From the sequence record MK308676.1: a stretch of DNA of 64,000 nt. One strand, 5' to 3'. A program made the position numbers and the translations under genes. Below the pieces are notes generated by a model that was not told the DNA's origin, searched no databases, and saw only the letters and a program-made list of their open reading frames with translations. Shown piece after piece: positions 1,133 to 14,233 of this stretch (position 1 is its first letter; each line of letters opens with the position of its first letter).

Positions 1133-1927
1133 CTACCATTGAGCCCGGGCCAGTTTAAGACAAAGTTCTCTGACATCTGCATCTACCAACTCACCTAGAT
1201 GCTCGCGCATTCGGGTTTGGGTAGTCGACGTATGCCACTTCTTCTCTAGTCCCAGGTCGATGACTCTGTTCTTCGCTTTCTGACTAGGGCACTTAAAGTG
1301 GTTAGACCCATCGCCGAAGAGCTGTAGTGTGAAGAGGTTAAACGGGAAGTGTTGTAAATCTTCTCGTTTGTTTAATTTACTAAACCATTTGGCCTGAGGT
1401 TTTATTTTGCCTGTGTGGCTTTCCAGTAACTCTAGTTTAGAGAACTTGAATCGGTTAAGTAAATCAAACGGAAACGACGTTATCATCCACGCAGTAGTCC
1501 CTACCGACGGCAGTTCTATATCTGACGTAATGAGCTTGTCGCCTAGCTGTTTAAAGACCACTTCCATCATTATCCGCTCTGCTGTTTCATATGCCTTAGC
1601 GTTCTCTGATTTGGCTTCGACTAGTGCAGCGTGAGGGTAGCGATTAGGTAGTGAGCGATAGGACAAATGGTAGAACTTAGGCGCGATGCCTTGGTTCGTA
1701 CATAGTCCCTCTATGTTCTCCAACTCTTCGAGGAAGTCTTTGAACATATGGACCACCGGAGGGCGGTCCGCGTTTTTCCAGCTGCCCCAGAAGTTTCGGA
1801 ATAACGTACGCACGTTCATCCAAAGGTCCTGGGGTTTGGGTCCGTCTCCAACAATGTGCATCTCGAAAGGTTGCGCTGTTGGTACTGAGAGCGGTAGCTG
1901 GTCGCCCAAGGAGCGCTTAACTATCAT
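1133..1927 (-). CDS. Conserved jumbo-phage protein (phiKZ gp66-like, possibly nuclease-fold)
   Basis: 264 aa, coupled to the SbcD-like gene; LWMNVRTLFRN motif. Confidence 0.55.
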   Translation of the reverse strand: MIVKRSLGDQLPLSVPTAQPFEMHIVGDGPKPQDLWMNVRTLFRNFWGSWKNADRPPVVHMFKDFLEELENIEGLCTNQGIAPKFYHLSYRSLPNRYPHAALVEAKSENAKAYETAERIMMEVVFKQLGDKLITSDIELPSVGTTAWMITSFPFDLLNRFKFSKLELLESHTGKIKPQAKWFSKLNKREDLQHFPFNLFTLQLFGDGSNHFKCPSQKAKNRVIDLGLEKKWHTSTTQTRMREHLGELVDADVRELCLKLARAQW

Positions 1928-3078
1928 TATGCTGCCTCCAAGATTTCGTCAAGATAGACTAGGGTTACTTCAATCTCTTCTTCCGATATCCCTTGCATTC
2001 TCATCTCTTCCGCCAAGAGCTCATCTGCGTTGTCCTTAGTCATGGTGACCTGGTTGGTGGACATTGCAAAAGACTCCATGACACTAGCACGAGGAACGTC
2101 ATCACGCTCTACTTGCTTGTCCCAGACGATGTTAGGATACTTGTCGGAGAAATATTGCATTACTCCTTCGGAATACAGAGACTCCGATATAAGAAGACGA
2201 ATGAATCGGCGTTCTTCAGGATGACAATGTTCTTCCACAACTTCCATTGTGCGTTCGAAGGTATGTTGGGTTACATCCAGTGTTACCATGTAAGTCGCTT
2301 CTTCGTTCTCGTAGAAATGAACCTTGTCATGTTCTATACCGAGCGGAGAGACTTCAATGACGAAAAGACCTTTCTGTTCTTCTTCGCCTTGCTTTAATCT
2401 ATCCCAAGAGCCGTTCGTTATGAAGCGCTTCTTATAAATAGACTTGGTATGGATGTGTCCGTTGTTTACATAACGGTCGACTATACTTAAGTACGCATCA
2501 GGGTCATGGGCAGTAATGTCTAGACCTTGCTTTACATGGTGCTTGTACATTCCATGAGTTACGGCAAAGTCTACAGACTCTAAGCCTTCCTGAGCGAGAC
2601 GTTCTCTCACCATTTCCCAAACAGAATCAGGGTCACTGATTTCATCCGGTACATAGAGCCATGTGGAGCCGTCTTCTTCAGTGATGATGTCGATAGTTTC
2701 TACATAGCGTAGGTCCGTACGTTTATCTGCAACCATGTGATTGTTTAGTGTAACGAACTGAGAGGACTGCTTACGGTCATGTGATGGCGTGCCCTCCAAT
2801 ACTCGCAATTTAACATTGTTTTCTTGGCAGAAAGTAAGTAACATGCTGATAAACAATTGGGCATCGCCTACGTCTGCTTCCGGCAGTAACTGCGCCGCAT
2901 CAAAGAGGTCACCCGCGATAACTAAGTAGTCAAGCTCATGTACCTTAATGAGTTTGAAAAGCTTACGCAGGAGACGGCTTGAGATGTCTGCGGTCTTTAC
3001 TCGACGATGTAACAAATGGATGTCGGATACAAAGAGTATCTTAAGGCCAGTCGTCGTCCACAAATGTTTCGTGCCCAT
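1927..3078 (-). CDS. sbcD: SbcD/Mre11-like metallophosphoesterase nuclease
   Basis: Motifs SDIH, AGDLFD, LEGTPSHD, THG, GHIH; likely start MGTKHL at 3078. Confidence 0.88.
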   Translation of the reverse strand: MGTKHLWTTTGLKILFVSDIHLLHRRVKTADISSRLLRKLFKLIKVHELDYLVIAGDLFDAAQLLPEADVGDAQLFISMLLTFCQENNVKLRVLEGTPSHDRKQSSQFVTLNNHMVADKRTDLRYVETIDIITEEDGSTWLYVPDEISDPDSVWEMVRERLAQEGLESVDFAVTHGMYKHHVKQGLDITAHDPDAYLSIVDRYVNNGHIHTKSIYKKRFITNGSWDRLKQGEEEQKGLFVIEVSPLGIEHDKVHFYENEEATYMVTLDVTQHTFERTMEVVEEHCHPEERRFIRLLISESLYSEGVMQYFSDKYPNIVWDKQVERDDVPRASVMESFAMSTNQVTMTKDNADELLAEEMRMQGISEEEIEVTLVYLDEILEAA

Positions 3079-3532
3079 TTTGTTGCCCTTGAGTTTCTTG
3101 TTTCTGTTCTTCACCGTCAACGCGGTCATAACCGTAACGCTGGGCAATCTCTGCCCACGCTTCTAAGTCTGCATCGCTCTCGTCCACCTGTTCAAAACGA
3201 CCACCCAGCTCTTGCTGAATGTAGTTCATGGTGGTCTTAGGCGGATAAGCCTTAGAGACTCGGTCAATGTTTGCGAAGACTGCGTTAAAGTTTCCACCTA
3301 CTTGGGTTTCGGCAGAACGACGTAAAGCCGGTACGCGGAACAACTCGATGGTCTCATCTTCATCGTCTACGACACGAACCTGACTAAAAGGGTTTACTGC
3401 GATTTGGTCTATCCATCTCTGGCAGACTGCTTCGTCTCCTTCCACAAACCCAGGAAGGAAGATATCACGGAATGCCGTTTCGCGAATCCAAGGGAGGGCT
3501 TCAGCAGGCACTCGAAAGACAGAATCTGTCAT
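3041..3532 (-). CDS. Conserved jumbo-phage hypothetical protein
   Basis: 163-aa ORF overlapping its neighbours in the core block. Confidence 0.6.
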   Translation of the reverse strand: MTDSVFRVPAEALPWIRETAFRDIFLPGFVEGDEAVCQRWIDQIAVNPFSQVRVVDDEDETIELFRVPALRRSAETQVGGNFNAVFANIDRVSKAYPPKTTMNYIQQELGGRFEQVDESDADLEAWAEIAQRYGYDRVDGEEQKQETQGQQNGHETFVDDDWP

Positions 3533-3927
3533 CGGTTAATCTCCTCTATAAGGGCAACAGCCGTTGAGGTCGGGTCTACTGAAAGAACGCGACCTAGGCT
3601 ATAGATGTTGTTACCTGACCAGGCACGGACATCTATATTGATGTTGTAAGTAGCGGCATCAACGTCTTCAGAAGTAATGCTAACTTCAGCACGGTCAAAG
3701 ACTCTCTCTATATAAGAGGTCAGTGCTTGAGCGAGTTCGGAGACGAGAACTGTAGGGTTCTTTTGATTTACCGCAACTATCTTTTGAATCGACACGATGT
3801 ATTCCGGGAACAGATTACTGTCGTTGTGGCGAATTTCAAAAGCATTAGCGAACATAAGAGAAAGCATCTCTTTTGGTTCAGTAACATATCCTCCGCCGCC
3901 GAGGTGAGGAATACACTTCTTGGTCAT
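3529..3927 (-). CDS. Conserved jumbo-phage protein (possible gp25-like wedge fold)
   Basis: 132 aa, GGAG RBS, IPHLGGGGYV N-terminus. Confidence 0.5.
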   Translation of the reverse strand: MTKKCIPHLGGGGYVTEPKEMLSLMFANAFEIRHNDSNLFPEYIVSIQKIVAVNQKNPTVLVSELAQALTSYIERVFDRAEVSITSEDVDAATYNINIDVRAWSGNNIYSLGRVLSVDPTSTAVALIEEINR

Positions 3928-4006
3928 CTTAGACTCCTAAAAAGAAAAAAGCGTTAAGTTTGATAAAAGGAACCCAGGCCAGGTTCCTTCTATCTGATTT
4001 CTCGCC

Positions 4007-4636
4007 TTAGCCGATTAGCTCATTATACTGCGACGTTGGGTCGAGTAGTGAATCTTTAAGGAAGTGAGTGACAGTGTTGTAGGTATGGGCTACCGCTATC
4101 TTGTCGTTAAACGTAGGAGCGTAATCCATTTCCGCTGCTTCTACTGTGGTACGAGAAACAAGAATTTCGTTATCATCCTCATCGTACTCTTCCATCAGAA
4201 TACCGTTGGTGATTGTACGGTACTCGAAGCTACGGCCGAATGCTAGCGTTGGGGATGGGTTCACGTAAGCACCATCATAACCGTCAATGCGACCTTCGCG
4301 ATAAAGCTTGTTCAGCGCAGGATGTGCCATTACATAATGACGCATGCCTTCCGGACAGTGCTGTAGGTCTTCCATTGTTTCTAAGCGACAGATATCTGCC
4401 TCTTGCTTAAAGTGTTGGTTAACCATACCGCGAACTTGGTTAATGCGACGAGCGAACTCACCTGTTGTGAATTCTTGGTAACGCTGCTGTACTCGCTCTG
4501 CGATAGAAGCAGCATAACCTTGCGTCGATTGCACGAAGTTATGTACGTTCTCACGGATTTTATTTTGGAGTGCTTGCGATGGTCTGCCGAACAGACTTTG
4601 CATAGCTACGTCAGTATCCGCATAAATAGTTTGCAT
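4007..4636 (-). CDS. Conserved jumbo-phage hypothetical protein
   Basis: 209 aa, GGGAG RBS, ends DPTSQYNELIG. Confidence 0.6.
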   Translation of the reverse strand: MQTIYADTDVAMQSLFGRPSQALQNKIRENVHNFVQSTQGYAASIAERVQQRYQEFTTGEFARRINQVRGMVNQHFKQEADICRLETMEDLQHCPEGMRHYVMAHPALNKLYREGRIDGYDGAYVNPSPTLAFGRSFEYRTITNGILMEEYDEDDNEILVSRTTVEAAEMDYAPTFNDKIAVAHTYNTVTHFLKDSLLDPTSQYNELIG

Positions 4637-4759: not shown

Positions 4760-5935
4760 TTACTTTTTCTTTTTCTTAGACTTTGGAGCAGGGTGGTAAC
4801 TATCGACTATCTTCCGGAACTGGCTTATCTGGGCGTCACTCACCACATAGACGGGATGAATGCCTTTTACAGGTACGCGCATTTTCTTGAGATAGTCTAA
4901 GTCTTCCAGGAGTTCATCTGCGACGCCAATGTCATTACTTAGCTCATAGATGGCCTGGGAGAAAGCAGGTAGGTCTAAGTCCACCTCCAATTCTTCCACT
5001 AGGTCATGAATGGATTCGCAGTATTCCGGCTTAAGCGGGCGACCGTCCTCATCTGTGGTCACATAATGGTAAGGTCCCGTGGCGAAGCCTCCGACAAAAG
5101 TCTCGCCGCGCCAGACACAGATGCGGCCATCCGAAATGGTTTCGGTAAGGTCATCGTTGCCTAAACTTAGTTCCAACAAAGGGGACTGTATTAGCTTCTT
5201 AGATGCAGGGGCACCTATACCTTCGAACATCTTATTGATGAGGCTTTCCATATGGTTAACCTTTTCTAAGATTGCCGAATTGTCGTAGACTGTCTGTAGC
5301 TTAGGCCGGTGTAAGTCAGGCCTCTCCACATCTTCGTCCTTTTTAAAGGCGAAGTCACAAAGATTCCAATCGCCTCTAGGAGCCGATAGTTCTAACCTAC
5401 GATAGTCGCGCTGTTCTTCATAAGGTTTAGAGCGAGCAATGAGTTCCTGCACATTTACCGTATGCAACTCATGTGTTGGCACATGATAGTGAACCCCTGC
5501 CAATTGCCCATCTTCACTGACGAAGATAAGTTCTCGAGACTGGACGTCATAAACTCGACCCGTGTTGGCGCTTACGGCTAGGTTAGGGTACCCTGCAACA
5601 GCAACCGACTGAATCTCTTTATTCTTGTCGAACGGGTCAGGGAAAGATAAACCAGGTAGCTCCACGAAGTCCCTGTAGATGAACGACACATTGCCGGCAT
5701 CCACCGGGACGAAGTCTAGCTGTTGTGGCCGGATAATGAAACGACCGTAGTTATCAAAGTAGAAAACCTTTAGCCACTCTGGCGTGATGGTAATCTTCAA
5801 TGGGGCCACAGTGTAGCCTTTGATTTCCAGTTCAAATGGTAACGGTACTGATTTACCATGGAGACAATCATAGAGCTCGTATTCGTCGGCCGAATAGCGA
5901 TTGTCCGTAAACGGAATAACTTTAGGCAGGCACAT
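4760..5935 (-). CDS. Hypothetical protein with a degenerate NUMOD4-like segment
   Basis: GYPNLAVSANTGRVYD resembles NUMOD4; no intact HNH seen. Confidence 0.45.
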   Translation of the reverse strand: MCLPKVIPFTDNRYSADEYELYDCLHGKSVPLPFELEIKGYTVAPLKITITPEWLKVFYFDNYGRFIIRPQQLDFVPVDAGNVSFIYRDFVELPGLSFPDPFDKNKEIQSVAVAGYPNLAVSANTGRVYDVQSRELIFVSEDGQLAGVHYHVPTHELHTVNVQELIARSKPYEEQRDYRRLELSAPRGDWNLCDFAFKKDEDVERPDLHRPKLQTVYDNSAILEKVNHMESLINKMFEGIGAPASKKLIQSPLLELSLGNDDLTETISDGRICVWRGETFVGGFATGPYHYVTTDEDGRPLKPEYCESIHDLVEELEVDLDLPAFSQAIYELSNDIGVADELLEDLDYLKKMRVPVKGIHPVYVVSDAQISQFRKIVDSYHPAPKSKKKKK

Positions 5936-6389
5936 CTTTATACCTCTTAAAACTGTTGTGAAAGTAAATGTTATCAGGGACCTCTATAAAAGAAGTAAAG
6001 CCCTTCCATAACTCCAAAGGGGAATAACCATTGAGTCCATGACCGTCCGCTTTCTGGACGACAATGAACATTTTATCCGGATGTTCTCTAGCGCACTCGT
6101 AGAGCTCGACTATGTTCTCGCGGATTTGGTCCAAGCCCACTGAGCAAGGACCTTCTGTGGGATAGCGTATCTCTCTACCATCCGGTAGCTTCTCTACGAA
6201 GCCAGCTTTGAGGTTCTTGGTTACCAAGGCGTAGGTCTGACCCATAAGTCCCCGGCCTACTCCGTACTTGGCTCCATACCTTAAGGCTAACTTCGCAGCT
6301 CCCAAGCCATGGCGCCCCTCGGGGTTTGAACCGTAGACGAAGACCATGTTCGGTTTCAGTTTGGTAATGGTACCGTTCCACCATTTCAT
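5922..6389 (-). CDS. Macro-like phage protein (FVxGSNxxGxHGxGAA family)
   Basis: VFVYGSNPEGRHGLGAAKLA...GLMGQTYALVTK. Confidence 0.7.
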   Translation of the reverse strand: MKWWNGTITKLKPNMVFVYGSNPEGRHGLGAAKLALRYGAKYGVGRGLMGQTYALVTKNLKAGFVEKLPDGREIRYPTEGPCSVGLDQIRENIVELYECAREHPDKMFIVVQKADGHGLNGYSPLELWKGFTSFIEVPDNIYFHNSFKRYKDVPA

Positions 6390-6398
6390 GGACCCTCC

Positions 6399-6932
6399 TT
6401 ATTTGCGCTTAATGAGACCTTTCTCTTCTAACACCTTAAAGAACTTCTTCTGGTTATCGTTGGCTTCGCGGTTAGGGGAAGTGCCGATATAGCTATAGTA
6501 AGGATGCGGACATACCGTGCGTCCTGTACTGAAGAAGCGGCGCATCTCTTTTTCAATCTCCTGGTGGTTATTGTTCTTGACATGCATCATTGTTCCGCGA
6601 TAACCGGCGAGTTTAAGATGGCGATTAAACAAAGTCCACGCTACGTAAGTCGGAGCTCCATTGGCCATTTGGTTAAGGGTTTTACGGTTGACCGGCGTCT
6701 TATAGTCAACCATGTTGCGCATGCGTACTTGAAGAGGCTTACCTGTGGTCATGTGTAAAATAAGGCCTTTCAAAATCTTATCTTGGAGTTCTTCACTATA
6801 ATGTTGGCGCTTGACTAGCTCAATCATTCGATGATAGTATGCGACGTCCTTATTGTAGATATAATCTGCATAAGGGGTTGGGTTTACTTTATCGTGGTTT
6901 GACTTAGGCATTGTTCTGTCCTCTATGTTCAA
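6399..6932 (-). CDS. Basic hypothetical protein
   Basis: 177-aa ORF, in-operon. Confidence 0.6.
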   Translation of the reverse strand: MNIEDRTMPKSNHDKVNPTPYADYIYNKDVAYYHRMIELVKRQHYSEELQDKILKGLILHMTTGKPLQVRMRNMVDYKTPVNRKTLNQMANGAPTYVAWTLFNRHLKLAGYRGTMMHVKNNNHQEIEKEMRRFFSTGRTVCPHPYYSYIGTSPNREANDNQKKFFKVLEEKGLIKRK

Positions 6933-6982
6933 AAAATAAAAAATATGGTTTAGTGGAGAGTAGCCCTCGAAAGGGCTAACTC

Positions 6983-7336
6983 TTATTTTGCAAAGTATTC
7001 AAATTCGATTGTCTTAACGCCAGAGTGGCCTTCAATGCCACGCTCGAACTTCCATGGTTGGCTGTGTTCCTCTTCAATATGAGGCTCAGAGATGCGGATA
7101 TAGAAGCGACCTTTGGCGTCACGCGCTTCAAGCATTGCTTCCATATAAGCGATTGCGGTACGCTTAGTCTCAGGCTCAATCAGAATGATTGGAGTACCAA
7201 TAGGTAGTTGACGATGTTCCATAGTTAAGCGGTACTTTTCAGCAACACGCAGGATGATTGTTTCGTCGAACGAACGCTTACCTACTTCGTCTGCTTGAAC
7301 TTGCGGAATGCGAATAACTAGACCTGTTACTTTCAT
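6983..7336 (-). CDS. Hypothetical protein
   Basis: 117 aa, GAGGA RBS. Confidence 0.6.
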   Translation of the reverse strand: MKVTGLVIRIPQVQADEVGKRSFDETIILRVAEKYRLTMEHRQLPIGTPIILIEPETKRTAIAYMEAMLEARDAKGRFYIRISEPHIEEEHSQPWKFERGIEGHSGVKTIEFEYFAK

Positions 7337-7385
7337 GGGTAAATCCTCATTTTAGTTGAGTACATTATTGTACAATTGCATTAAG

Positions 7386-7405
7386 ACAATATAGGTTTTA
7401 CTTTT
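7386..7405 (-). promoter_or_regulatory. Early-promoter-like AAAAGTAAAACCTATATTGT
   Basis: Matches the recurrent motif. Confidence 0.6.
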
Positions 7406-7411
7406 GACTGG

Positions 7412-8002
7412 TTATTCTTCTTCCACAATGTCCCAAAAGAACTTTCTGTCTAAGAACGGTGTAAGAAAAACACTTACGACCGGATAACGGTAGTTCTCAA
7501 TTAGTTTAGTTTCTGGATGCTCTAGGTCGTCAAAGTCATAGTTCATGACTCTAGACCGTACGTTTAGTCCTCGCCATATATGGAGGACAAAGAAGAAGAA
7601 GAACGCATAGGTGCCCCAGATGCTGTTGTCGGCATTTGGCGGTGCGGCCGTCCCAGCCGTGCCATAGAAGCCTAGTCCCATTAAGTACGGCGTAGTGAAA
7701 TCTCTCACTTCGCCTATTTGGTAATAGTGGTACCCGGTGCGACCTACCGATACTGATTGTACGCCGAATCGAGTCTCTACTATCACATAATAATGGCAGC
7801 TACGACGAGTACACTCCTGGCCCTTATATGTAATTTTGCCGTACGTAGGGACACGAGATACCTGATAGGCATCGACCTGGACGGAGACATAAAACGCAAA
7901 GAGACACCACGCAATAACCCAGGTAACCGGGCGGTGCCAAAGAAAGCGTTTCTCTTTATTATAGATTCTAGTCTTCATCTTCATCGTCCTCAAAGTAGTC
8001 AC
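7412..8002 (-). CDS. Membrane protein (2 predicted TM segments)
   Basis: Hydrophobic stretches VTWVIAWCLFAFYV and YAFFFFFVLHIW. Confidence 0.6.
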   Translation of the reverse strand: MTTLRTMKMKTRIYNKEKRFLWHRPVTWVIAWCLFAFYVSVQVDAYQVSRVPTYGKITYKGQECTRRSCHYYVIVETRFGVQSVSVGRTGYHYYQIGEVRDFTTPYLMGLGFYGTAGTAAPPNADNSIWGTYAFFFFFVLHIWRGLNVRSRVMNYDFDDLEHPETKLIENYRYPVVSVFLTPFLDRKFFWDIVEEE

Positions 8003-8162
8003 TATACGGAACGACGTCTAAAGAAAAGCCAGGGAGCGACTGAGGAACATGGACCTCTAGTCCTTTACACCATCCTTTCATGAGGTCGGTGACCGGAGTA
8101 GAGTTTACCGGCTCAGTAATCTGGATACTCATATGTAACCTCGGTAGGTAGTATGCCGTCAC
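7968..8162 (-). CDS. Small hypothetical protein with acidic tail
   Basis: 64-aa ORF overlapping both neighbours. Confidence 0.45.
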   Translation of the reverse strand: MTAYYLPRLHMSIQITEPVNSTPVTDLMKGWCKGLEVHVPQSLPGFSLDVVPYSDYFEDDEDED

Positions 8163-8379
8163 GCATGCGTGAGGCGGTTATTAAAAGAAGAGTCGTATTG
8201 AGACCAATCATGTCTCCGGAGATTTTAGCCCATAGTGGGTTGTTCGTTTGAACGTCCCACTTGAGCATGTTAAGATGCATCTCCCAAAGTTCCATTTCTT
8301 TCTCTGTGACTCTCGTTGTTAAAGCAGTGCGGCGAATCGACCGGTACTTTAAAGGCGGTACGTTAAAGAGATGCTTCAT
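8113..8379 (-). CDS. Hypothetical protein
   Basis: 88-aa ORF, in-operon. Confidence 0.55.
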   Translation of the reverse strand: MKHLFNVPPLKYRSIRRTALTTRVTEKEMELWEMHLNMLKWDVQTNNPLWAKISGDMIGLNTTLLLITASRMRDGILPTEVTYEYPDY

Positions 8380-8445
8380 AGTTTCGTCTCGCTAAAAATA
8401 CAATAAGGAAAGGCAAAGGACCGAGCGGTCCTTTGCTTATAACGT

Positions 8446-9000
8446 CTACGGGCGTTTGTTCGGGTCGTACATGTGGTAGTCTAGGTCGTACGCCTTAGGC
8501 ATAGTCTCGATTTGTTCACCGTCTAGCTTCACAACTAGGTCTTCCATGTGCACTACGATGTTGCCTTCAATCTCAGAGAAAACACCGCGGAGCTTAAAGC
8601 TTGCAGTGACAGCTTTACCTTCGACGATTGCTTCCGAAGATAGACTATGTTTCGCTTCCAGCGAATGGCAGCGCGGTGCCTCAGAGGAAGGGGAGAACTT
8701 GAAGTTTAACTCTTTTGGTAATTGAAAGCCGATTGAGTCGAACCCGGGCAGGTTCGCTTCAAAGTAAACGCCTGTCACAAAGATGTCAGGAGAAACATAG
8801 CCCATATCGAAACTTGGTTGGCCTCGGTCTGAAAGACTCAAAAGGTCTAAGCGTCGACCGAACAGGATGGGCGCCGTTTGGAACTGCTCTTCGTCGCTAA
8901 CCTTTACGGTTTTAAGGCAAGAGGCGAATAGGTGGTCTTTATTGCGGTCGTTTAAAACGGGATACAGTTGCATTTCTTTGTCCTCAAAGTCGATTAACAT
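8446..9000 (-). CDS. Stand-alone domain resembling the internal domain of the phiKZ-type major capsid protein
   Basis: TAPILFGRRLDLLSLS ... AYDLDYHMYDPNKR resembles recalled MCP motifs. Confidence 0.5.
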   Translation of the reverse strand: MLIDFEDKEMQLYPVLNDRNKDHLFASCLKTVKVSDEEQFQTAPILFGRRLDLLSLSDRGQPSFDMGYVSPDIFVTGVYFEANLPGFDSIGFQLPKELNFKFSPSSEAPRCHSLEAKHSLSSEAIVEGKAVTASFKLRGVFSEIEGNIVVHMEDLVVKLDGEQIETMPKAYDLDYHMYDPNKRP

Positions 9001-9191: not shown

Positions 9192-10079
9192 CTATTTATC
9201 TTCGTCCACCATCCGGTCATGGACACTCTGAAGCCAATCGATGAGCTCTTTAACTTCTTTCTTATCTAGGTCTTCAGAGAAGTGGTTATCGCAATCTTCC
9301 TGAATTTCCAATAGCTCCGGCTTAGCAGGGTCGAAAGAAAAGCTTACGATTGAAGAATAATCGCGATGGTTTCTACCGTATTCCTCTTCTCTCTTTTTGA
9401 TAAATCGGACCGTTTGATACGCAACGGTATAGCCGATTACTTCAGCTTCCAGCGGAGAGTCCAAATAGAACTCCGTAGTAAAGTAAGGCGTGAAGACGGA
9501 GCTCTTGGTTTCTAGAGTCGCCTGAATTCCGAGACGTATAGACATAGAAGCAGTCATGCCGTCTTCTGGTCGTATGCAGCCAAAGACGTCAGGTAGAGGC
9601 CTGCCGTCAGATGTGACATATCGGAACTTGAGAGGTAGACCAACCGACATTTCGAGGTGGTTTAAGTTCGATTCTTCTCTAATCGACACAGTGCGGCCGT
9701 TGGTGACCGAAACCGCTAAAAACGCTTCCGTTTGTTTGTTGGGGTCGCGTAGCTTAACAAGGTAAGACGTGATGTGGAATTGTTCTACATCCACTTCGTC
9801 GGTTTCCTCGAGGAGGTCTAGACTGCCCTTACCGTTTCTGCCTAAAGCGATGAGGTCCACAGGGGCGCCAGCCTTAATATAGTCGGTATCACTGACGAAC
9901 AGTTCTGCCATCTCTTCAGAGCGACGAACGATTACGTGGTCCGGGCGGAGCTGTTCAATGTGTGCTCTAAAAGCCGATTCGCTCTTAACGCCCAGAGGGT
10001 TGTTAATATGGAGATGATTTGACATTTCGTAATCCTCTTTTGAAAATGAGATAAAAAGTGGAGACCCGAAGGCCTCCAC
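9192..10079 (-). CDS. Second stand-alone MCP-domain-like protein
   Basis: KAGAPVDLIAL..LEETDEVD and AEVIGYTV resemble recalled MCP motifs; likely start at 10025. Confidence 0.5.
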   Translation of the reverse strand: MEAFGSPLFISFSKEDYEMSNHLHINNPLGVKSESAFRAHIEQLRPDHVIVRRSEEMAELFVSDTDYIKAGAPVDLIALGRNGKGSLDLLEETDEVDVEQFHITSYLVKLRDPNKQTEAFLAVSVTNGRTVSIREESNLNHLEMSVGLPLKFRYVTSDGRPLPDVFGCIRPEDGMTASMSIRLGIQATLETKSSVFTPYFTTEFYLDSPLEAEVIGYTVAYQTVRFIKKREEEYGRNHRDYSSIVSFSFDPAKPELLEIQEDCDNHFSEDLDKKEVKELIDWLQSVHDRMVDEDK

Positions 10080-10080
10080 T
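10053..10080 (-). terminator. Intrinsic terminator after beta' exon 2
   Basis: AGUGGAGGCC-UUCG-GGUCUCCACU followed by UUUUAU. Confidence 0.75.
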
Positions 10081-10085
10081 CGACT

Positions 10086-10274
10086 TTATTGCAGTGTAAC
10101 TTGCTCTGCCGCACACCAAGCATATTGGTTTGCAACTGTAACAGCAGGCATCTTGATGTTGTTCTTAATAGAACCAGGGTTTTGCGTAGAGTGAATATCG
10201 TACTGAGGCTCCAACATACTGAAGCGCTCTGCCATGTATTCGTCTAGTGCTAACGACCCCGTCATCATATCTCC
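10086..10274 (-). CDS. rpoC: nvRNAP beta' N-subunit, exon 2 (GDMMTG..., 62 aa)
   Basis: GGA GAT ATG ATG completes NADFD+GD in frame, directly after the terminal G of the intron. Confidence 0.85.
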   Translation of the reverse strand, partial: GDMMTGSLALDEYMAERFSMLEPQYDIHSTQNPGSIKNNIKMPAVTVANQYAWCAAEQVTLQ

Positions 10275-12096
10275 CGTACCTTCAGCCAGTTCGTTAGACT
10301 GACCCGCAGCATGACCTGCTAAGCTCTAGGGTTTCCCACTAGACGACTCACCTTCGTGAGAAGGGCATTTGACTGCCGTCGAGACTATATCATCGGTTCC
10401 TCTCAAGGACACCGCCTCATGCTTCGCCCGCACTTGCTGGGCTAGCGCTAACTTATTCCGCTATTAGGATAGCATCTGTTAGCATTAGTCGTTGAACCTG
10501 CCACAGTTTAAAGTAGCTCGGCTGCTGATTACCAATTCCATGTTCCCTTAGGAGTGTCATCGCGACAGGTCCATAGGACATCTCTTATGTTCTTTCTGTT
10601 TTCACAGCCTTTCCATCTGAACTTTCGTTCTCTGTTTCGGCCATAAGAGCTTTACGGATTTCCAGCAATTCAAAAGGTTTTACTTCGACTTAGATTTCCA
10701 GCTTCTCAATCTTTTTATGTTAATGTTAAAGCGCCCAAGCAAAGGGACGTTTTTCTTTTCAGCGTTTCTTATTGTAGACTCAGCTATGCCTATTTGCTTA
10801 GCAACTTGCTGTATGGAAGTGCCTACGTAGATTTCTTTAGTTAAGGGGTCCTCTACAGTAACGATGGCCGAAATGCGACTAGCGTCCTTCAGGATAGCGC
10901 CTTCCGCTTCTGTAAAGTCTGGCCATTCAGGTTTGTCCAAAACGGGACGAACCACGTAGCCTCGGCACGGGACATCGTCGAAGGTACTCTTCATCCTGGA
11001 AACATTCGACTCCACTGTCCCTATGTATCTGGCAGCTGCTCCGGAACTTTCAAAGATTTTTACTTCTCCGAAACTTTCCGGGCGATAGCTTTTTACCATA
11101 CAGGACGCGCACATACCAGAGCGACCAACCTGTTTTTCTAGCTCCGACGCCACCGGTACCGGCAATCCGCTGTCTTCATAGGAAAAAGCATATGTGCCCT
11201 TTTCATTTAGCTGATAGACGGCTTCTTCTGCGGCTCTTCTAGAAAGGCGGTCCACGCTATTGAAGTGCATGCCTGTGGCTTTAGCGGCCACCGTAGAGGA
11301 ACTATATATTTCCTGAGTGTTTTCTCTAACGTCAAAAACACAAACTCTTCTACCCTTCCCTTTTCTTGAGATGTTCTTTTCTTTCCCGGCGTTCTTGCTC
11401 TGAGTAAGCCATTGAAGGTTACTGAGCCCATCATTAAAGCCATCAGTATCCTTATGGTCACACTCTAAAACATCCACGTTAGCCGGATAGTCTTTAAAAG
11501 CCAGTAGTTTCGCTCTGCCTCTCCCAAGTAACAGATGTCGCCCCAAGTCGTCTAAAATACTGGCCTTCATATAACGACCATGTATGCTAAATGAATGGGT
11601 CTTTCCGGTTGCTCCATTCAGCAATAGACCTTCTTTAGACAGTCCGTATTTCGTACAGCCTGGAATCCTAAAGTAATTTGGATTTTTTCTAAGCGGCAGG
11701 GGTTTGGTAAACCCATACGTTAGATTACCTGGATGTAGATTATTACGGTCACCGTCTATGAACAATGGGCGTATTTTTCTTACTTCTTCCAGAGAAAAAG
11801 CGAAGAGTTTCTTCCATGCCCAGACCATAACTTTAGCGATGGCCACTTCCACACGGCCATTATCGCTTTTTAAGAATACGCTTTTGTTTCTTCCATTGAC
11901 TTTGCGGACACATTTTGCTTCCGTTCCGTCACTAGAATAAACATTACCCTTTTTGTCTAGCCAGAGACCATAGTTTGGAATCTCGACTCGACTAACATTA
12001 ACATAACCACTTAAACGTTCTCTTTTCATAGCTTATCTCCTCTATGATATCCGTTTTTATGGTTTATTTTGATTTAAAAAACTTACCCTTCTTTTA
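10275..12096 (-). mobile_element. Group I intron (1822 nt) with homing endonuclease
   Basis: Exon ends in U and intron ends in G; P AAUUGCUGGAAA (~10659-10670), Q AAUCAGCAG (~10522-10530), R UUCAACGACUA (~10486-10496), S GAUAUAGUC (~10383-10391); IGS GUCGAAGU 10682-10689. Confidence 0.9.
10680..12029 (-). CDS. Intron-encoded HNH homing endonuclease
   Basis: CDHKDTDGFNDGLSNLQW HNH motif; degenerate upstream copy FIDGDRNNLHPGNL; NUMOD4-like and NUMOD1-like HTH repeats; GAGGAG RBS. Confidence 0.85.
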   Translation of the reverse strand: MKRERLSGYVNVSRVEIPNYGLWLDKKGNVYSSDGTEAKCVRKVNGRNKSVFLKSDNGRVEVAIAKVMVWAWKKLFAFSLEEVRKIRPLFIDGDRNNLHPGNLTYGFTKPLPLRKNPNYFRIPGCTKYGLSKEGLLLNGATGKTHSFSIHGRYMKASILDDLGRHLLLGRGRAKLLAFKDYPANVDVLECDHKDTDGFNDGLSNLQWLTQSKNAGKEKNISRKGKGRRVCVFDVRENTQEIYSSSTVAAKATGMHFNSVDRLSRRAAEEAVYQLNEKGTYAFSYEDSGLPVPVASELEKQVGRSGMCASCMVKSYRPESFGEVKIFESSGAAARYIGTVESNVSRMKSTFDDVPCRGYVVRPVLDKPEWPDFTEAEGAILKDASRISAIVTVEDPLTKEIYVGTSIQQVAKQIGIAESTIRNAEKKNVPLLGRFNINIKRLRSWKSKSK

Positions 12097-13434
12097 ATCG
12101 AAATCTGCGTTAGGTCCCACCAGTGCAAGGACCGAGAGTGCTATCTCGCATTCGCTTAGGCCCACGATTCTTAATCCTTGCGTGCTAGACCTTGCAAGAC
12201 TAGGATAACGAGTCAGAGCACACTTAATGCCGCCGCCCTTACGCTTACGTGTACGCAACGTAGAAGGCAGTTCTTTAAGTGTAGGGTTACCAGCCGCATC
12301 TTTTACTACGATGGTCTGAGCAACGCTCTCAGGAGTCGGAGGAGTATCATCGATAAGTTCTTCCAGGACATCTACAAGTAGAGGGTCCCAATCCGTAGCA
12401 TGTTGTAGTACGTAGGCTTGGGCCTGAGCGTGACTAAACTTATGTTTCCGGATGAGCTTAGCGATGACTAATGGTTCCAGACAAGTTAACATCTGATGGT
12501 ACGGTACGAGAATAGTATCGTACTCATGAGGACGATGATAAGACGTGATGATGTTACGGAACGAGTAGTTCATGCGCGTACCGAAGTTCACACGGCGTAA
12601 CCAACCAGACTTAGACGATAAGTTGTTTTCGATAACGTCTTTATAGTAGTTGGTTAAGTCTACCATGATGTTAGTAAAGCGAGTCTCTAATCGCTTCACG
12701 TTTATCATGCCCATTGTGCCGGCTGCGGCAAAGATAGCTTCCATTGCAGAAGCCATTGTCTTATCGTAGTAGTTACCGTAAGCTGTTGACTCGATGGCAA
12801 ATGCTACTTTAGACGGGATTGGAATGTGCTTAACGAATAGATGCTCACGGTACTCTTCCACAAACTCTTTCAGTTCTTGGCGTTTCTGCACGGAGGCAGT
12901 CTGGCGTAAAGCAACTTCTAGAATCTTGTCGAACTCTTCTTTTACATTAGAGAGGCCACGTTTAAGACCTAGCTTCTTGAAGTGCTCTACAATAGAGGTA
13001 CCTTTCTTCTTAGACTCATCTGGGTCAGGCAGCTTAGGGTCCATTGCCCACTGCAAGCCATCGAAGCCACGGTTATCCTTTAAGCGTTCGCTTAGGAAAA
13101 TCCAAGGCAGTGGTGCTAAGAAGTAATCGATGCCGCGAGGAACAGAAATCCAGATTTCCGATTCGATTGCTTGGTTGTGGTGAGATACCACTTTGGTGTT
13201 ACAGTGTTCACAGATAACACCGAGGTTAACTGCTTCTTTTGTCTTACGACAACCACACTGAGGCACAGTAGCTAAAACATCCGAAGACTCATACTTAGTC
13301 ACCGTCAATGACTCAAGTAGCTTTCGGTCTTCTTCGGTTTCAAGTTTCAGTTCGTTTACGATGACCGGAGGGTTTTCCATTGAAGATAAACGCCAGTCCA
13401 AGTTACCGAATTTTAGAACCTGTGTTCCTAACAT
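12097..13434 (-). CDS. rpoC: nvRNAP beta' N-subunit (phiKZ gp55-like), exon 1
   Basis: Zn-finger CGC..CEHC, KSGWLRR..FGTR, TRYPSL, ends GPNADFD. Confidence 0.9.
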
Positions 13435-13462
13435 AGGGTCGTGCTCCTTTGTTATGTTTAAC

Positions 13463-14233
13463 TTACTGTTCGTACTTAGTGTTTTGGCTTACGTCGCCAA
13501 CTTCACTCTTAGGGGGAATATAGGACAAACCGTTCTTTGAAACGTACTCCGTAATCTCCTCAAGAGTGTCGAACTTCTTACCACCCAGGTGCTTAGGGAT
13601 AATCTCCATAAACTCCACTAGGGCTCTTTGGTCCGCTACGGCAGCACCTACGTCATCTAACGCGAAATGTGTTGACTGGGTGCGACTGAGGCGGTTAGGT
13701 AGGATTTTAGAAGGATACATCATCGTACGAGTAGACGAGGTATCCGCTACCTGGTGGCCTAGGATTAAACCTAAGCGAGGCATCTGCGCATTGATGAAAG
13801 ACTTATCGAAGTTCACGGACTTCCCGTGGACGATAATGACGTACTTCGCTTTGGCGTCATAAGCCGGTAGTTTACCGTCAACTAGGAACTCTCGATGGTT
13901 CGCAGTAAAGTAGCTAGTTAAGATAAAAATGATGCGGTCTTCTACTTCGTGAAGAGGTAGCCGCTCGCGTGTCTCCCATTCTACGTCAAAGCCGTTTTCA
14001 ATATGGAACTGCACAGTGCCTTCGTCAGAACGCGCCATTTCTTCAGCTGTAGGCTGAACCATATAGTCGAAGCTGACCTGTTCTTCTAAGTCTTCCGATA
14101 GAATTGTTCCTGCCACTTGGACTAGTGGGTAATGATTACAGCCAGCAACATAAGTGCCGTCCTCTAGCTTAACTGGGTAGTTGAAACCCATTGTCTCTGA
14201 ATCCAGGGACAGATATACGATGGTCTTTGCCAT
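13463..14233 (-). CDS. Oligoribonuclease-like DEDDh 3'-5' exonuclease
   Basis: LDSETMG, HGKSVNFDKSFI, DTSS, THFALDDV motifs. Confidence 0.75.
   Translation of the reverse strand: MAKTIVYLSLDSETMGFNYPVKLEDGTYVAGCNHYPLVQVAGTILSEDLEEQVSFDYMVQPTAEEMARSDEGTVQFHIENGFDVEWETRERLPLHEVEDRIIFILTSYFTANHREFLVDGKLPAYDAKAKYVIIVHGKSVNFDKSFINAQMPRLGLILGHQVADTSSTRTMMYPSKILPNRLSRTQSTHFALDDVGAAVADQRALVEFMEIIPKHLGGKKFDTLEEITEYVSKNGLSYIPPKSEVGDVSQNTKYEQ

Follow-up and report, generated by a model that had tools for sequence, protein, structure and literature searches.

A putative mobile group I intron within the catalytic motif of a non-virion RNA polymerase gene of Vibrio phage vB_VmeM-Yong

The window analysed here is a stretch of 64,000 nucleotides (nt) from sequence record MK308676.1, and its positions 10000-13500 match four isolates of Vibrio phage vB_VmeM-Yong at 100% identity (accessions MK308674-MK308677; genome of ~290 kb; host, Vibrio mediterranei), hereafter Yong. 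In this region the gene for the N-terminal beta'-like subunit (beta'-N) of a non-virion RNA polymerase (nvRNAP) is interrupted, and the interrupting segment, 12096-10275 on the minus strand, is very probably a phage-type group I intron that is self-splicing and mobile, placed in the NADFDGD magnesium-binding motif between the codons for the second Asp and the Gly. The evidence lies in the anatomy of the gene, in homology, in the motif that is restored when the exons are joined, in selection on the RNA fold, and in the patchy presence of introns among relatives.

Anatomy of the interrupted gene

The boundaries of the two exons and the intron are given in Table 1, and several features of the junctions are clear (a slash marks a splice junction throughout). 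The 3′ end of exon 1 reads ...GCA GAT TTC GAT and is followed at once by an in-frame TAA at 12096-12094, and the 3′ junction reads ...GGTACG/GGA GAT ATG ATG. The base before the 5′ splice site is U (12097), and joining GAT to GGA restores both the reading frame and the sequence DFDGD; the exons joined in silico encode a product of 508 amino acids containing GPNADFDGDMMTG, in the context ...VGPNADFDGDMMTGSLALDEY. Junctions shifted by one base either way were rejected, as they destroy an Asp codon or lose the U(-1) or the terminal guanosine (omega-G). Homologues without an interruption are found in sm033 and 201phi2-1, which read PNADFDGD, and in BONAISHI, which reads PNCDFDGD; the last ~60 residues of all three align with Yong exon 2, with an E-value of 1e-7 for the match to sm033 residues 438-502. 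The exon and intron pattern is far beyond chance. A preliminary description of this stretch, made from its letters and a list of open reading frames (ORFs), had given the same boundaries, and a fresh reading of the sequence and the ORF list finds each of them correct to the base; the insertion point that it named, NADFD/GD, agrees with the exon ends and with the alignment to uninterrupted homologues, its 508-residue product with NADFDGD is what exon joining gives, and exon 1 on its own, which stops after NADFD, would indeed encode a product without the third Asp.

The host gene is identifiable from matches to exon 1. It matches PHROG 2987 ('RNA polymerase beta subunit') with an E-value of 1.6e-91 across profile positions 5-420 of 478, and the tail of the profile left uncovered is about as long as exon 2. 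Among solved structures the closest relative is chain A of PDB 7ogp (E 4.7e-44), which the depositors name by both PHIKZ055 and PHIKZ056.1 and which reads ...LKAPNADFD... unbroken. Judged by these matches the gene is a homologue of phiKZ gp55, the beta'-N subunit of the nvRNAP; this N-terminal subunit bears the catalytic DFDGD (PMC8287921). GenBank labels each Yong gene in the region 'hypothetical protein', and records exon 2 (QAX96057) only as a 60-residue ORF from the first ATG of the exon. The three entries QAX96059, QAX96058 and QAX96057 are exon 1, the putative intron homing endonuclease, and exon 2 of a catalytic RNA polymerase subunit, and the same misannotation by gene callers is to be expected in related genomes.

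Table 1. Coordinates of the features discussed; those of Yong are positions in the window, and those of other genomes are positions in the respective locus.
Feature	Position	Strand	Details
Yong exon 1, nvRNAP beta'-N	12097..13434	-	446 codons, ends N-A-D-F-D; GenBank QAX96059
Yong P1 5′ strand	12097..12104	-	last 8 exon bases AUUUCGAU; 5′ splice site after U12097
Yong putative group I intron	10275..12096	-	1822 nt; opens with in-frame TAA, closes with omega-G at 10275
Yong Shine-Dalgarno-like GAGGAG	12037..12042	-	7 nt upstream of endonuclease ATG
Yong predicted HNH homing-endonuclease ORF	10680..12029	-	449 residues plus stop; GenBank QAX96058; in P1 loop
Yong ribozyme core	~10689-10275	-	Rfam-matched stretch is 10362..10756
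Yong internal guide sequence, P1 3′ strand	10682..10689	-	GUCGAAGU; 8 base pairs (bp) with exon 1
Yong P3/P4 5′ strands	10679-10662	-	Rfam alignment
Yong P4 3′ strand and P6	10530-10516	-	Rfam alignment
Yong J6/7 and P7 5′ strand	10498-10486	-	Rfam alignment
Yong candidate P7.1	10483-10447	-	assigned by hand, provisional
Yong candidate P7.2	10446-10421	-	assigned by hand, provisional
Yong P3 3′ strand GAGG	10418-10415	-	assigned by hand, provisional
Yong P8	10413-10395	-	Rfam alignment
Yong J8/7 and P7 3′ strand	10394-10383	-	Rfam alignment
Yong P9	10377-10364	-	Rfam alignment
Yong further 3′ hairpins	down to 10284	-	within the core
Yong exon 2	10089..10274	-	62 codons from G-D-M-M-T-G; stop 10088-10086
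Yong terminator-like hairpin	10056..10081	-	11 pairs, GC-rich, then T-run; 5 nt past exon 2 stop
L035 (Logan SRR22535648) intron 1	5333-7269		after NAD; 458-residue HNH; Rfam 28 bits
L035 micro-exon TTCGAT	7270-7275		6 nt
L035 intron 2	7276-8669		after NADFD; 348-residue HNH; Rfam 55 bits
L010 tandem	5692-7073		ORF-less intron after NAD, 9-nt micro-exon TTTGACGGT, intron after NADFDG
L039 tandem	1674-2484		ORF-less intron after N, 15-nt micro-exon GCCGACTTTGACGGT, intron after NADFDG
Goslar (L042; NC_048170, 167154-172282, reverse complement)	2633-4421		break after GACTT; RefSeq Intron_gpI non-coding RNA and HNH gp186

The genes around this locus are informative as to the type of phage. An ORF at 16237-14336 (minus strand) matches the nuclear shell protein chimallin (PHROG 4795, E 1e-31), and because of this family match Yong is taken to be a nucleus-forming jumbo phage of the phiKZ kind. 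The chimallin gene lies one gene upstream of the beta'-N gene, an order common to Yong, phiKZ, 201phi2-1, sm033 and Goslar; the ORF between the two in Yong (256 residues, 13466-14233, minus strand) has no Pfam or PHROG match. The hairpin just beyond exon 2 is a plausible intrinsic terminator, being a consensus match only from a scan whose assumptions do not cover the terminators of chimallivirus RNA polymerases.

The ribozyme and the intron-encoded endonuclease

The preliminary description had called the interruption a group I intron, and this is borne out by a match of Rfam family RF00028 to 10756-10362 (minus strand) at 53.8 bits, where the gathering threshold is 50. Calculated for the region the match has an E-value of 4.2e-12, and for the whole window, in which it is the sole Rfam match, one of 7.1e-11; the hallmark segments GGUUCAACGACUA and GAUAUAGUC are both present in the intron.

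The fold could be refined by comparison with introns of related phages. Insertion points in the motif are lettered a (after N), b (after NAD), c (after the first base of the Phe codon), d (after NADFD, the Yong site), d2 (after NADFDG) and e (after NADFDGD), and L numbers denote the loci compared. All junctions outside Yong were placed in silico by restoration of the motif, a U (rarely a C) before the intron and a G as its last base, most of them with an Rfam match. In Yong the end of exon 1 can form an 8-bp P1 with the internal guide sequence, with U12097 opposite G10689 as a G.U pair at the splice site. The guide overlaps the last three codons of the HNH gene and the first base of its stop codon and lies directly 5′ of P3, and the whole HNH ORF therefore forms the loop of P1. 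The pair at P1 position -7 is G.U in Yong and G-C in L036 and L022. The site-d introns of L036, L022 and L035 (its intron 2) have, at the same place directly 5′ of P3, GUCGAA(G/A)U with AAAAC after it; in L022 the guide is just 12 nt past the 5′ splice site, giving a compact P1. A second exon complement of 9 bp, at intron position 110 inside the ORF, was rejected as the guide because the other three site-d introns have theirs directly 5′ of P3. The P1/P2 proposed by the Rfam alignment (a hairpin at 10756-10730, inside the ORF) was likewise set aside in favour of the conserved guide at 10689-10682.

In the remainder of the core (Table 1), the order of P7, two extra hairpins, P3′ and P8 resembles the IA layout of T4 introns. 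The P3 3′ strand of the Rfam alignment, AACAGAUGC, was rejected for GAGG at 10418-10415; in the alignment P3 pairing through GAGG is kept by two-sided changes in L022, and the stem that Rfam uses as P3′ is a separate hairpin, the candidate P7.1, with three compensatory changes. We also note that GUCGA of the guide (10685-10689) is complementary to UCGAC (10377-10381), immediately 3′ of the P7 3′ strand, and that RNAalifold pairs the two; the guide could be sequestered in such an alternative fold, and since the pairing is invariant among the four site-d introns there is no covariation for or against it.

Selection on the fold was examined by folding the Yong core alone (minimum energy) and scoring the substitutions in L035 intron 2, with 3′ partners slid by 1-3 columns as a control. 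The Yong core (intron positions 1407-1822) is 84% identical to that intron over 423 nt; the two exon 1 sequences share 69% nucleotide identity. In Yong's own fold pairs were kept by two-sided change in 13 cases, kept by one-sided change in 9 and broken in 7, and in the slid controls the corresponding numbers are 0-4, 4-12 and 21-29. Such an outcome is to be expected of a functional RNA fold, and it argues that the secondary structure of the ribozyme is maintained by selection, a result that is supportive rather than conclusive because only two sequences enter into it.

The protein encoded within the intron has an HNH core at about residues 189-214, a NUMOD1 domain at 322-344 (Pfam, 26.4 bits against a cut-off of 22.8) and a weak helix-turn-helix-like match at about 403-425, and PHROG HNH families match it with an E-value of 8e-8. 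The catalytic and structural HNH residues H192, N204, W207 and N213 are invariant across all 12 aligned intron ORFs of the locus, among which Pfam detects HNH_3 in 9, NUMOD1 in 7 and I-HmuI_NUMOD-like in 4; a sequence search of PDB with the Yong protein matched no chain. By analogy the ORF is predicted to encode an I-HmuI-like HNH/NUMOD endonuclease that nicks intron-less alleles near the motif. Its closest similarities do not follow the ribozyme, as it shares 39% identity over its full length (E 2e-105) with the HNH protein of L035 intron 1, at site b, and only ~20% with those of the site-d introns of L036 and L035. The HNH protein is thus site-b-like, the ribozyme is site-d-like from the guide onward, and the two therefore have different histories, the ORF having been gained independently of the ribozyme. 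At least three endonuclease types occur with the same two ribozyme lineages.

Introns at the NADFDGD motif among relatives

The nearest relative of Yong, L034, comes from a Logan contig of 4974 nt (algae metagenome), and its exon 1 is 99.1% identical at the amino acid level and 93.4% at the nucleotide level. L034 is without Yong's intron and has a 1735-nt group I intron (Rfam 52.5 bits) at NAD/FDGD, 6 nt upstream, of a lineage that, unlike Yong's, is common to pir03, L007 and L035 intron 1 (84-89% identity). The spliced coding sequences of Yong and L034 show 31 differences within an interval of 180 nt that surrounds the motif, a divergence of 17%, compared with 5.4% over the remainder (Fisher p 2e-7, for an interval picked post hoc and a single pair); the divergence rises toward the motif from both sides, and almost all of the differences that were read are synonymous. 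This pattern fits, but does not prove, one left by co-conversion during homing from diverged donors.

Intron states are similarly scattered in a maximum-likelihood phylogeny built from 29 rows of the host protein (with the duplicate loci L008, L014, L017, L037 and L038 left out), in which nearly every well-supported sister pair differs in intron state: Yong has d and L034 b, L035 has b and d and L007 only b, pir03 has b and sm033 none, L039 has a and d2 and L024 none, L013 has c and L022 d, L041 has e and 201phi2-1 none, and PA7 has e in a group with phiKZ and U5, which have a. Intron presence varies among close relatives independently of the host-gene phylogeny. These differences between near-identical phages, and the increase of exon divergence toward the sites, lend homing indirect support. 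We also note two shortened reading frames: in U5 (L043, 1636-2119) the intron at the phiKZ site scores 80 bits with Rfam and its HNH gene is cut to an annotated remnant of 37 residues, and in pir03 (L003, 4333-5232) the intron ORF is split into three short annotated coding sequences; the intron endonuclease genes of both phages look to be in decay.

Across the chimallivirus nvRNAP beta'-N genes read, the 21 bases of the seven NADFDGD codons have introns at seven distinct positions, a sample of junctions and no census. These are after N (phiKZ, U5 and L039 intron 1), after NAD (pir03, L007/L008, L034, L009, L010 intron 1 and L035 intron 1), after the first base of the Phe codon (L013/L014), after its second base (Goslar, where RefSeq has an Intron_gpI feature), after NADFD (Yong, L022, L036/L037, L035 intron 2 and contigs of run X2), after NADFDG (the second introns of L010 and L039) and after NADFDGD (PA7, L041 and a candidate second intron in Goslar). 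A tblastn search with a fragment spanning the motif finds a homologue in 239 GenBank phage records, and at least two intron states occur within the genus Phikzvirus.

Three genomes (L035, L010 and L039) have two introns in the motif at once, with micro-exons of 6, 9 and 15 nt, respectively, between them. In L035, as long as intron 1 is unspliced, the exon part of the P1 target of intron 2 consists of the 6 micro-exon bases, and the guide of intron 2 pairs with exactly those 6. The NADFDG introns of L010 and L039 start alike (AGAGCATTGCCGTCG and AGAATGATTGCCGTCG) and have a compact P1. Goslar is probably a fourth tandem carrier, with a candidate second intron and a 10-nt micro-exon: its DGD codons are an isolated CGACGGTGAC at 4069-4078, followed by ~343 nt before exon 2 (gp185), and this stretch contains group-I-like core motifs and the complementary P7 pair GAAUAC/GUAUUC, although an Rfam scan of it gave no match at E<=0.01.

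Two further observations concern the sites themselves. In pir03, L007, L034 and L035 intron 1 the 5′ splice site follows GAC, such that a C stands in place of the near-universal U; L009 and L010, also at site b, have U. The candidate guide of the four C-type introns, GUCCGC, forms 3+2 bp with GCNGAC and leaves the variable third base of the Ala codon unpaired, and the C-type splice site must work because pir03 is a cultivated, viable phage. The second concerns L041, a metagenomic contig resembling 201phi2-1, which has an extra group I intron (5623-6854, Rfam 83 bits) at a second conserved motif of this gene, HRN/PTLQRGSTQ, ~40 codons upstream of NADFDGD, in addition to that after NADFDGD; 201phi2-1 has neither.

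We lean toward the interpretation that the Yong intron is one occupant of a hot spot at NADFDGD, where cores and HNH genes recombine as modules between neighbouring sites in an ongoing contest of co-infecting jumbo phages, each occupied position destroying the nuclease target of its neighbours. A literature search of incomplete coverage found no paper on intron clustering in NADFDGD or linking this motif to phage introns, and the reviews found treat introns in jumbo-phage RNA polymerase genes in general terms only. Such a hot spot would be a crowded, fast-changing landing pad for different introns and nucleases and a natural system in which to study how homing elements compete, how introns trade nuclease modules, and how introns mediate interference among co-infecting phages that form a nucleus, the last of which has been experimentally shown only for PhiPA3 gp210. 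Taken alone the Yong intron is of moderate interest; for a specialist more lies in the hot spot, in the exchange of modules and in the tandem introns separated by micro-exons.

Proposed mechanism, alternatives, and comparison with known systems

A model for the function of the Yong intron can be outlined as follows. The gene would be transcribed as a single pre-mRNA, presumably an early transcript made by the virion RNA polymerase (vRNAP) as in phiKZ, in which AUUUCGAU would pair with GUCGAAGU ~1.4 kb downstream to form P1, looping out the endonuclease ORF. Guanosine-initiated cleavage after U12097 and exon ligation after omega-G10275 would join GAT to GGA, giving a junction that would read ...GATTTCGAT/GGAGATATG..., and the spliced mRNA would be translated into the 508-residue subunit with NADFDGD intact. 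On unspliced RNA, translation would halt at the opening TAA of the intron and yield a protein without the third catalytic Asp, and active nvRNAP, together with middle and late transcription, should therefore depend on splicing; if so, the ribozyme is an obligatory step of the infection cycle, ahead of middle and late transcription. The HNH protein would be translated from its own ribosome-binding site and start codon and, by analogy with I-HmuI and PhiPA3 gp210 (PMC11620839), would nick intron-less alleles of co-infecting relatives near the motif, with recombinational repair copying the intron in. Since the HNH ORF ends within the guide, P1 could not form on an RNA while a ribosome is terminating there; chimalliviruses transcribe within a ribosome-free phage nucleus (PMC12908238), and it is our speculation that this may resolve the conflict. 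In phiKZ the native gp55 has a mass of 56 kDa, which corresponds to a spliced product (PMC4666361).

Several considerations weigh against a mobile self-splicing intron. It is from sequence that we infer the splicing of the Yong intron and the nuclease activity and homing of the element, and one long-read transcriptome study of phiKZ saw no splicing of predicted introns (PMC10914365). A search for RNA sequencing runs that contain the Yong stretch found none. The Rfam score is only just over the gathering threshold, and the P1/P2 and P3 3′ strand of the Rfam alignment look misplaced, the former falling within the ORF and the latter on a stem for which P7.1 is the better assignment. It is unusual for P1 to close over a ~1.4-kb loop, the 9-bp exon complement within the ORF at intron position 110 would compete with the guide, and P10 is weak (AUCU/AGAU, 4 bp, offset 2) and unconserved in L022 or L035. 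Finally, the Pfam HNH_3 score of the endonuclease, 19.3 bits, is under the cut-off of 24.8.

Three other explanations were considered. It is highly improbable that there is no splicing, with the 446-residue and 60-residue products of a permanently split gene assembling in trans. GenBank does list three independent coding sequences, GGAG stands 2-5 nt before ATG codons of exon 2, and jumbo-phage RNA polymerase subunits are naturally split elsewhere (PMC7598289); however, the codons for the Gly and the third Asp are upstream of the 60-residue ORF and so would never be translated, leaving an enzyme without this Mg-binding Asp, and the gap is exactly filled by an Rfam-scoring ribozyme with compensatory evolution, flanked by U(-1) and omega-G. 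Moreover, uninterrupted homologues exist, and in the solved phiKZ enzyme the corresponding subunit is one fused chain. The span of P1 over a 1.4-kb loop and the overlap of the guide with a translated stop codon are the grounds for proposing a true group I intron that is not self-sufficient, needing a protein cofactor or a particular compartment for efficient splicing. The position of the guide within the last ORF codons and the first base of the stop, the competing 9-bp complement, the RNAalifold pairing of the guide with UCGAC 3′ of P7, and a phage nucleus whose freedom from ribosomes would remove the ribosome-P1 conflict (PMC12908238) are all in keeping with this. We nonetheless think it unlikely, as L036 and L035 intron 2 have the same layout at the same site, with the ORF in the P1 loop, and the layout evidently works; self-splicing in vitro is also well established for T4 group I introns with long looped-out ORFs.

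A possible but doubtful alternative accepts splicing and questions the endonuclease, which might be inactive, or be a maturase, or serve as a weapon against the polymerase gene of competing jumbo phages, without being for homing, or mainly so. The low HNH_3 score and the separate acquisition of the ORF, evident from the ~20% identity to same-site and 39% identity to neighbouring-site HNH proteins, are compatible with it, and the HNH protein encoded by the PhiPA3 intron in the vRNAP gene nicks the homologous gene of phiKZ to competitive advantage (PMC11620839). On the other hand the catalytic H/N/N residues and NUMOD1 of the Yong protein are intact, phages that are nearly identical differ in the introns they have, and divergence of the exons grows toward the site as co-conversion predicts; furthermore, the roles of weapon and homing enzyme are compatible with one another.

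The Yong insertion point, TTCGAT/GGN, is common to introns of four uncultivated relatives: L022 (IMG/VR, ~30% amino acid identity to Yong), L036/L037 (Logan, 60%), L035 intron 2 (72%), and the X2 contigs, which come from an independent run, are ~90% identical to Yong and span both splice junctions. In all carriers at this site the last exon base is T, not C, and the exon side is UUCGAU in 4/4. Differences from Yong include the ORF of L022, which is near the 3′ end of the intron and not in the P1 loop, and the additional intron of L035, 6 nt upstream. A blastn search of GenBank phages with the Yong intron and the L022 and L036 site-d sequences matched only the four Yong isolates, with short core motifs only in Staphylococcus, Lactococcus, Aeromonas and Pseudomonas phages, and a metagenome scan returned 4 loci. 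We also note three IMG/VR introns in unrelated genes (L027:14271, L028:1224 and L033:1088) that have the same guide and P3 start, GTCGAAGTAAAAC......AATTGC, and whose host exons also end ...TTCGAT, with translations ...KARFD/ and ...GSDFD/. The site-b introns of vB_pir03, L007/L008, L034 and L035 (intron 1) are in the same gene and motif and in the same clade of Vibrio phages as Yong, but lie 6 nt upstream and belong to another ribozyme lineage, with cores 84-89% identical among themselves, the guide GUCCGC, and, in four members, C rather than U before the splice site.

Phage group I introns at conserved active-site codons of essential nucleic-acid-metabolism genes, like that of Yong, include those of I-HmuI/I-HmuII (Bacillus phages SPO1 and SP82) and T4 td, nrdB and sunY, whose host genes encode DNA polymerase, thymidylate synthase and ribonucleotide reductase. 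The ORFs of T4 introns are looped out of P6 or P9, not P1. The HNH/NUMOD enzymes of the I-HmuI type nick one strand (reviewed in PMC12908238). The PhiPA3 gp210 intron also combines a group I ribozyme with an HNH nicking endonuclease beside catalytic Asp residues (PMC11620839), although it lies in the beta subunit gene of the vRNAP (gp211/209), and its function has been experimentally tested, whereas the Yong intron is known from sequence.

The closest parallel is with phiKZ gp55/gp56/gp56.1, and the statement of the preliminary description that introns are known in nvRNAP genes of phiKZ-like phages is correct on this account; according to PMC11512511 and PMC10914365, prediction of the phiKZ intron goes back to the paper on the phiKZ genome. 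Like the Yong intron it lies within NADFDGD of the beta'-N gene, with chimallin next to it, and it scores 75.6 bits with Rfam; the HNH protein is gp56, and the fused gp55 and gp56.1 product is the subunit in PDB 7ogp. To the question raised earlier of whether the exact site is shared, comparison of the junctions gives a negative answer, as the phiKZ intron is at N/ADFDGD, 12 nt upstream of NADFD/GD in Yong: exon 1 of phiKZ ends CCT AAT and exon 2 starts GCT GAT TTT GAC GGC GAT, in agreement with the phiKZ residue numbering 417-DFDGD-421 (PMC8287921), with the unbroken ...APNADFD... of 7ogp chain A and with the 56 kDa of the native subunit (PMC4666361). The guides also differ (the phiKZ candidate is GUUGGGU), similarity between the cores is limited to motifs that phage group I introns have in common, and the HNH proteins are 27% identical over 148 residues. 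The Yong intron is a further, unannotated case of the phiKZ gp55/gp56 type of intron, with a different insertion point and with a ribozyme and a nuclease of different origin.

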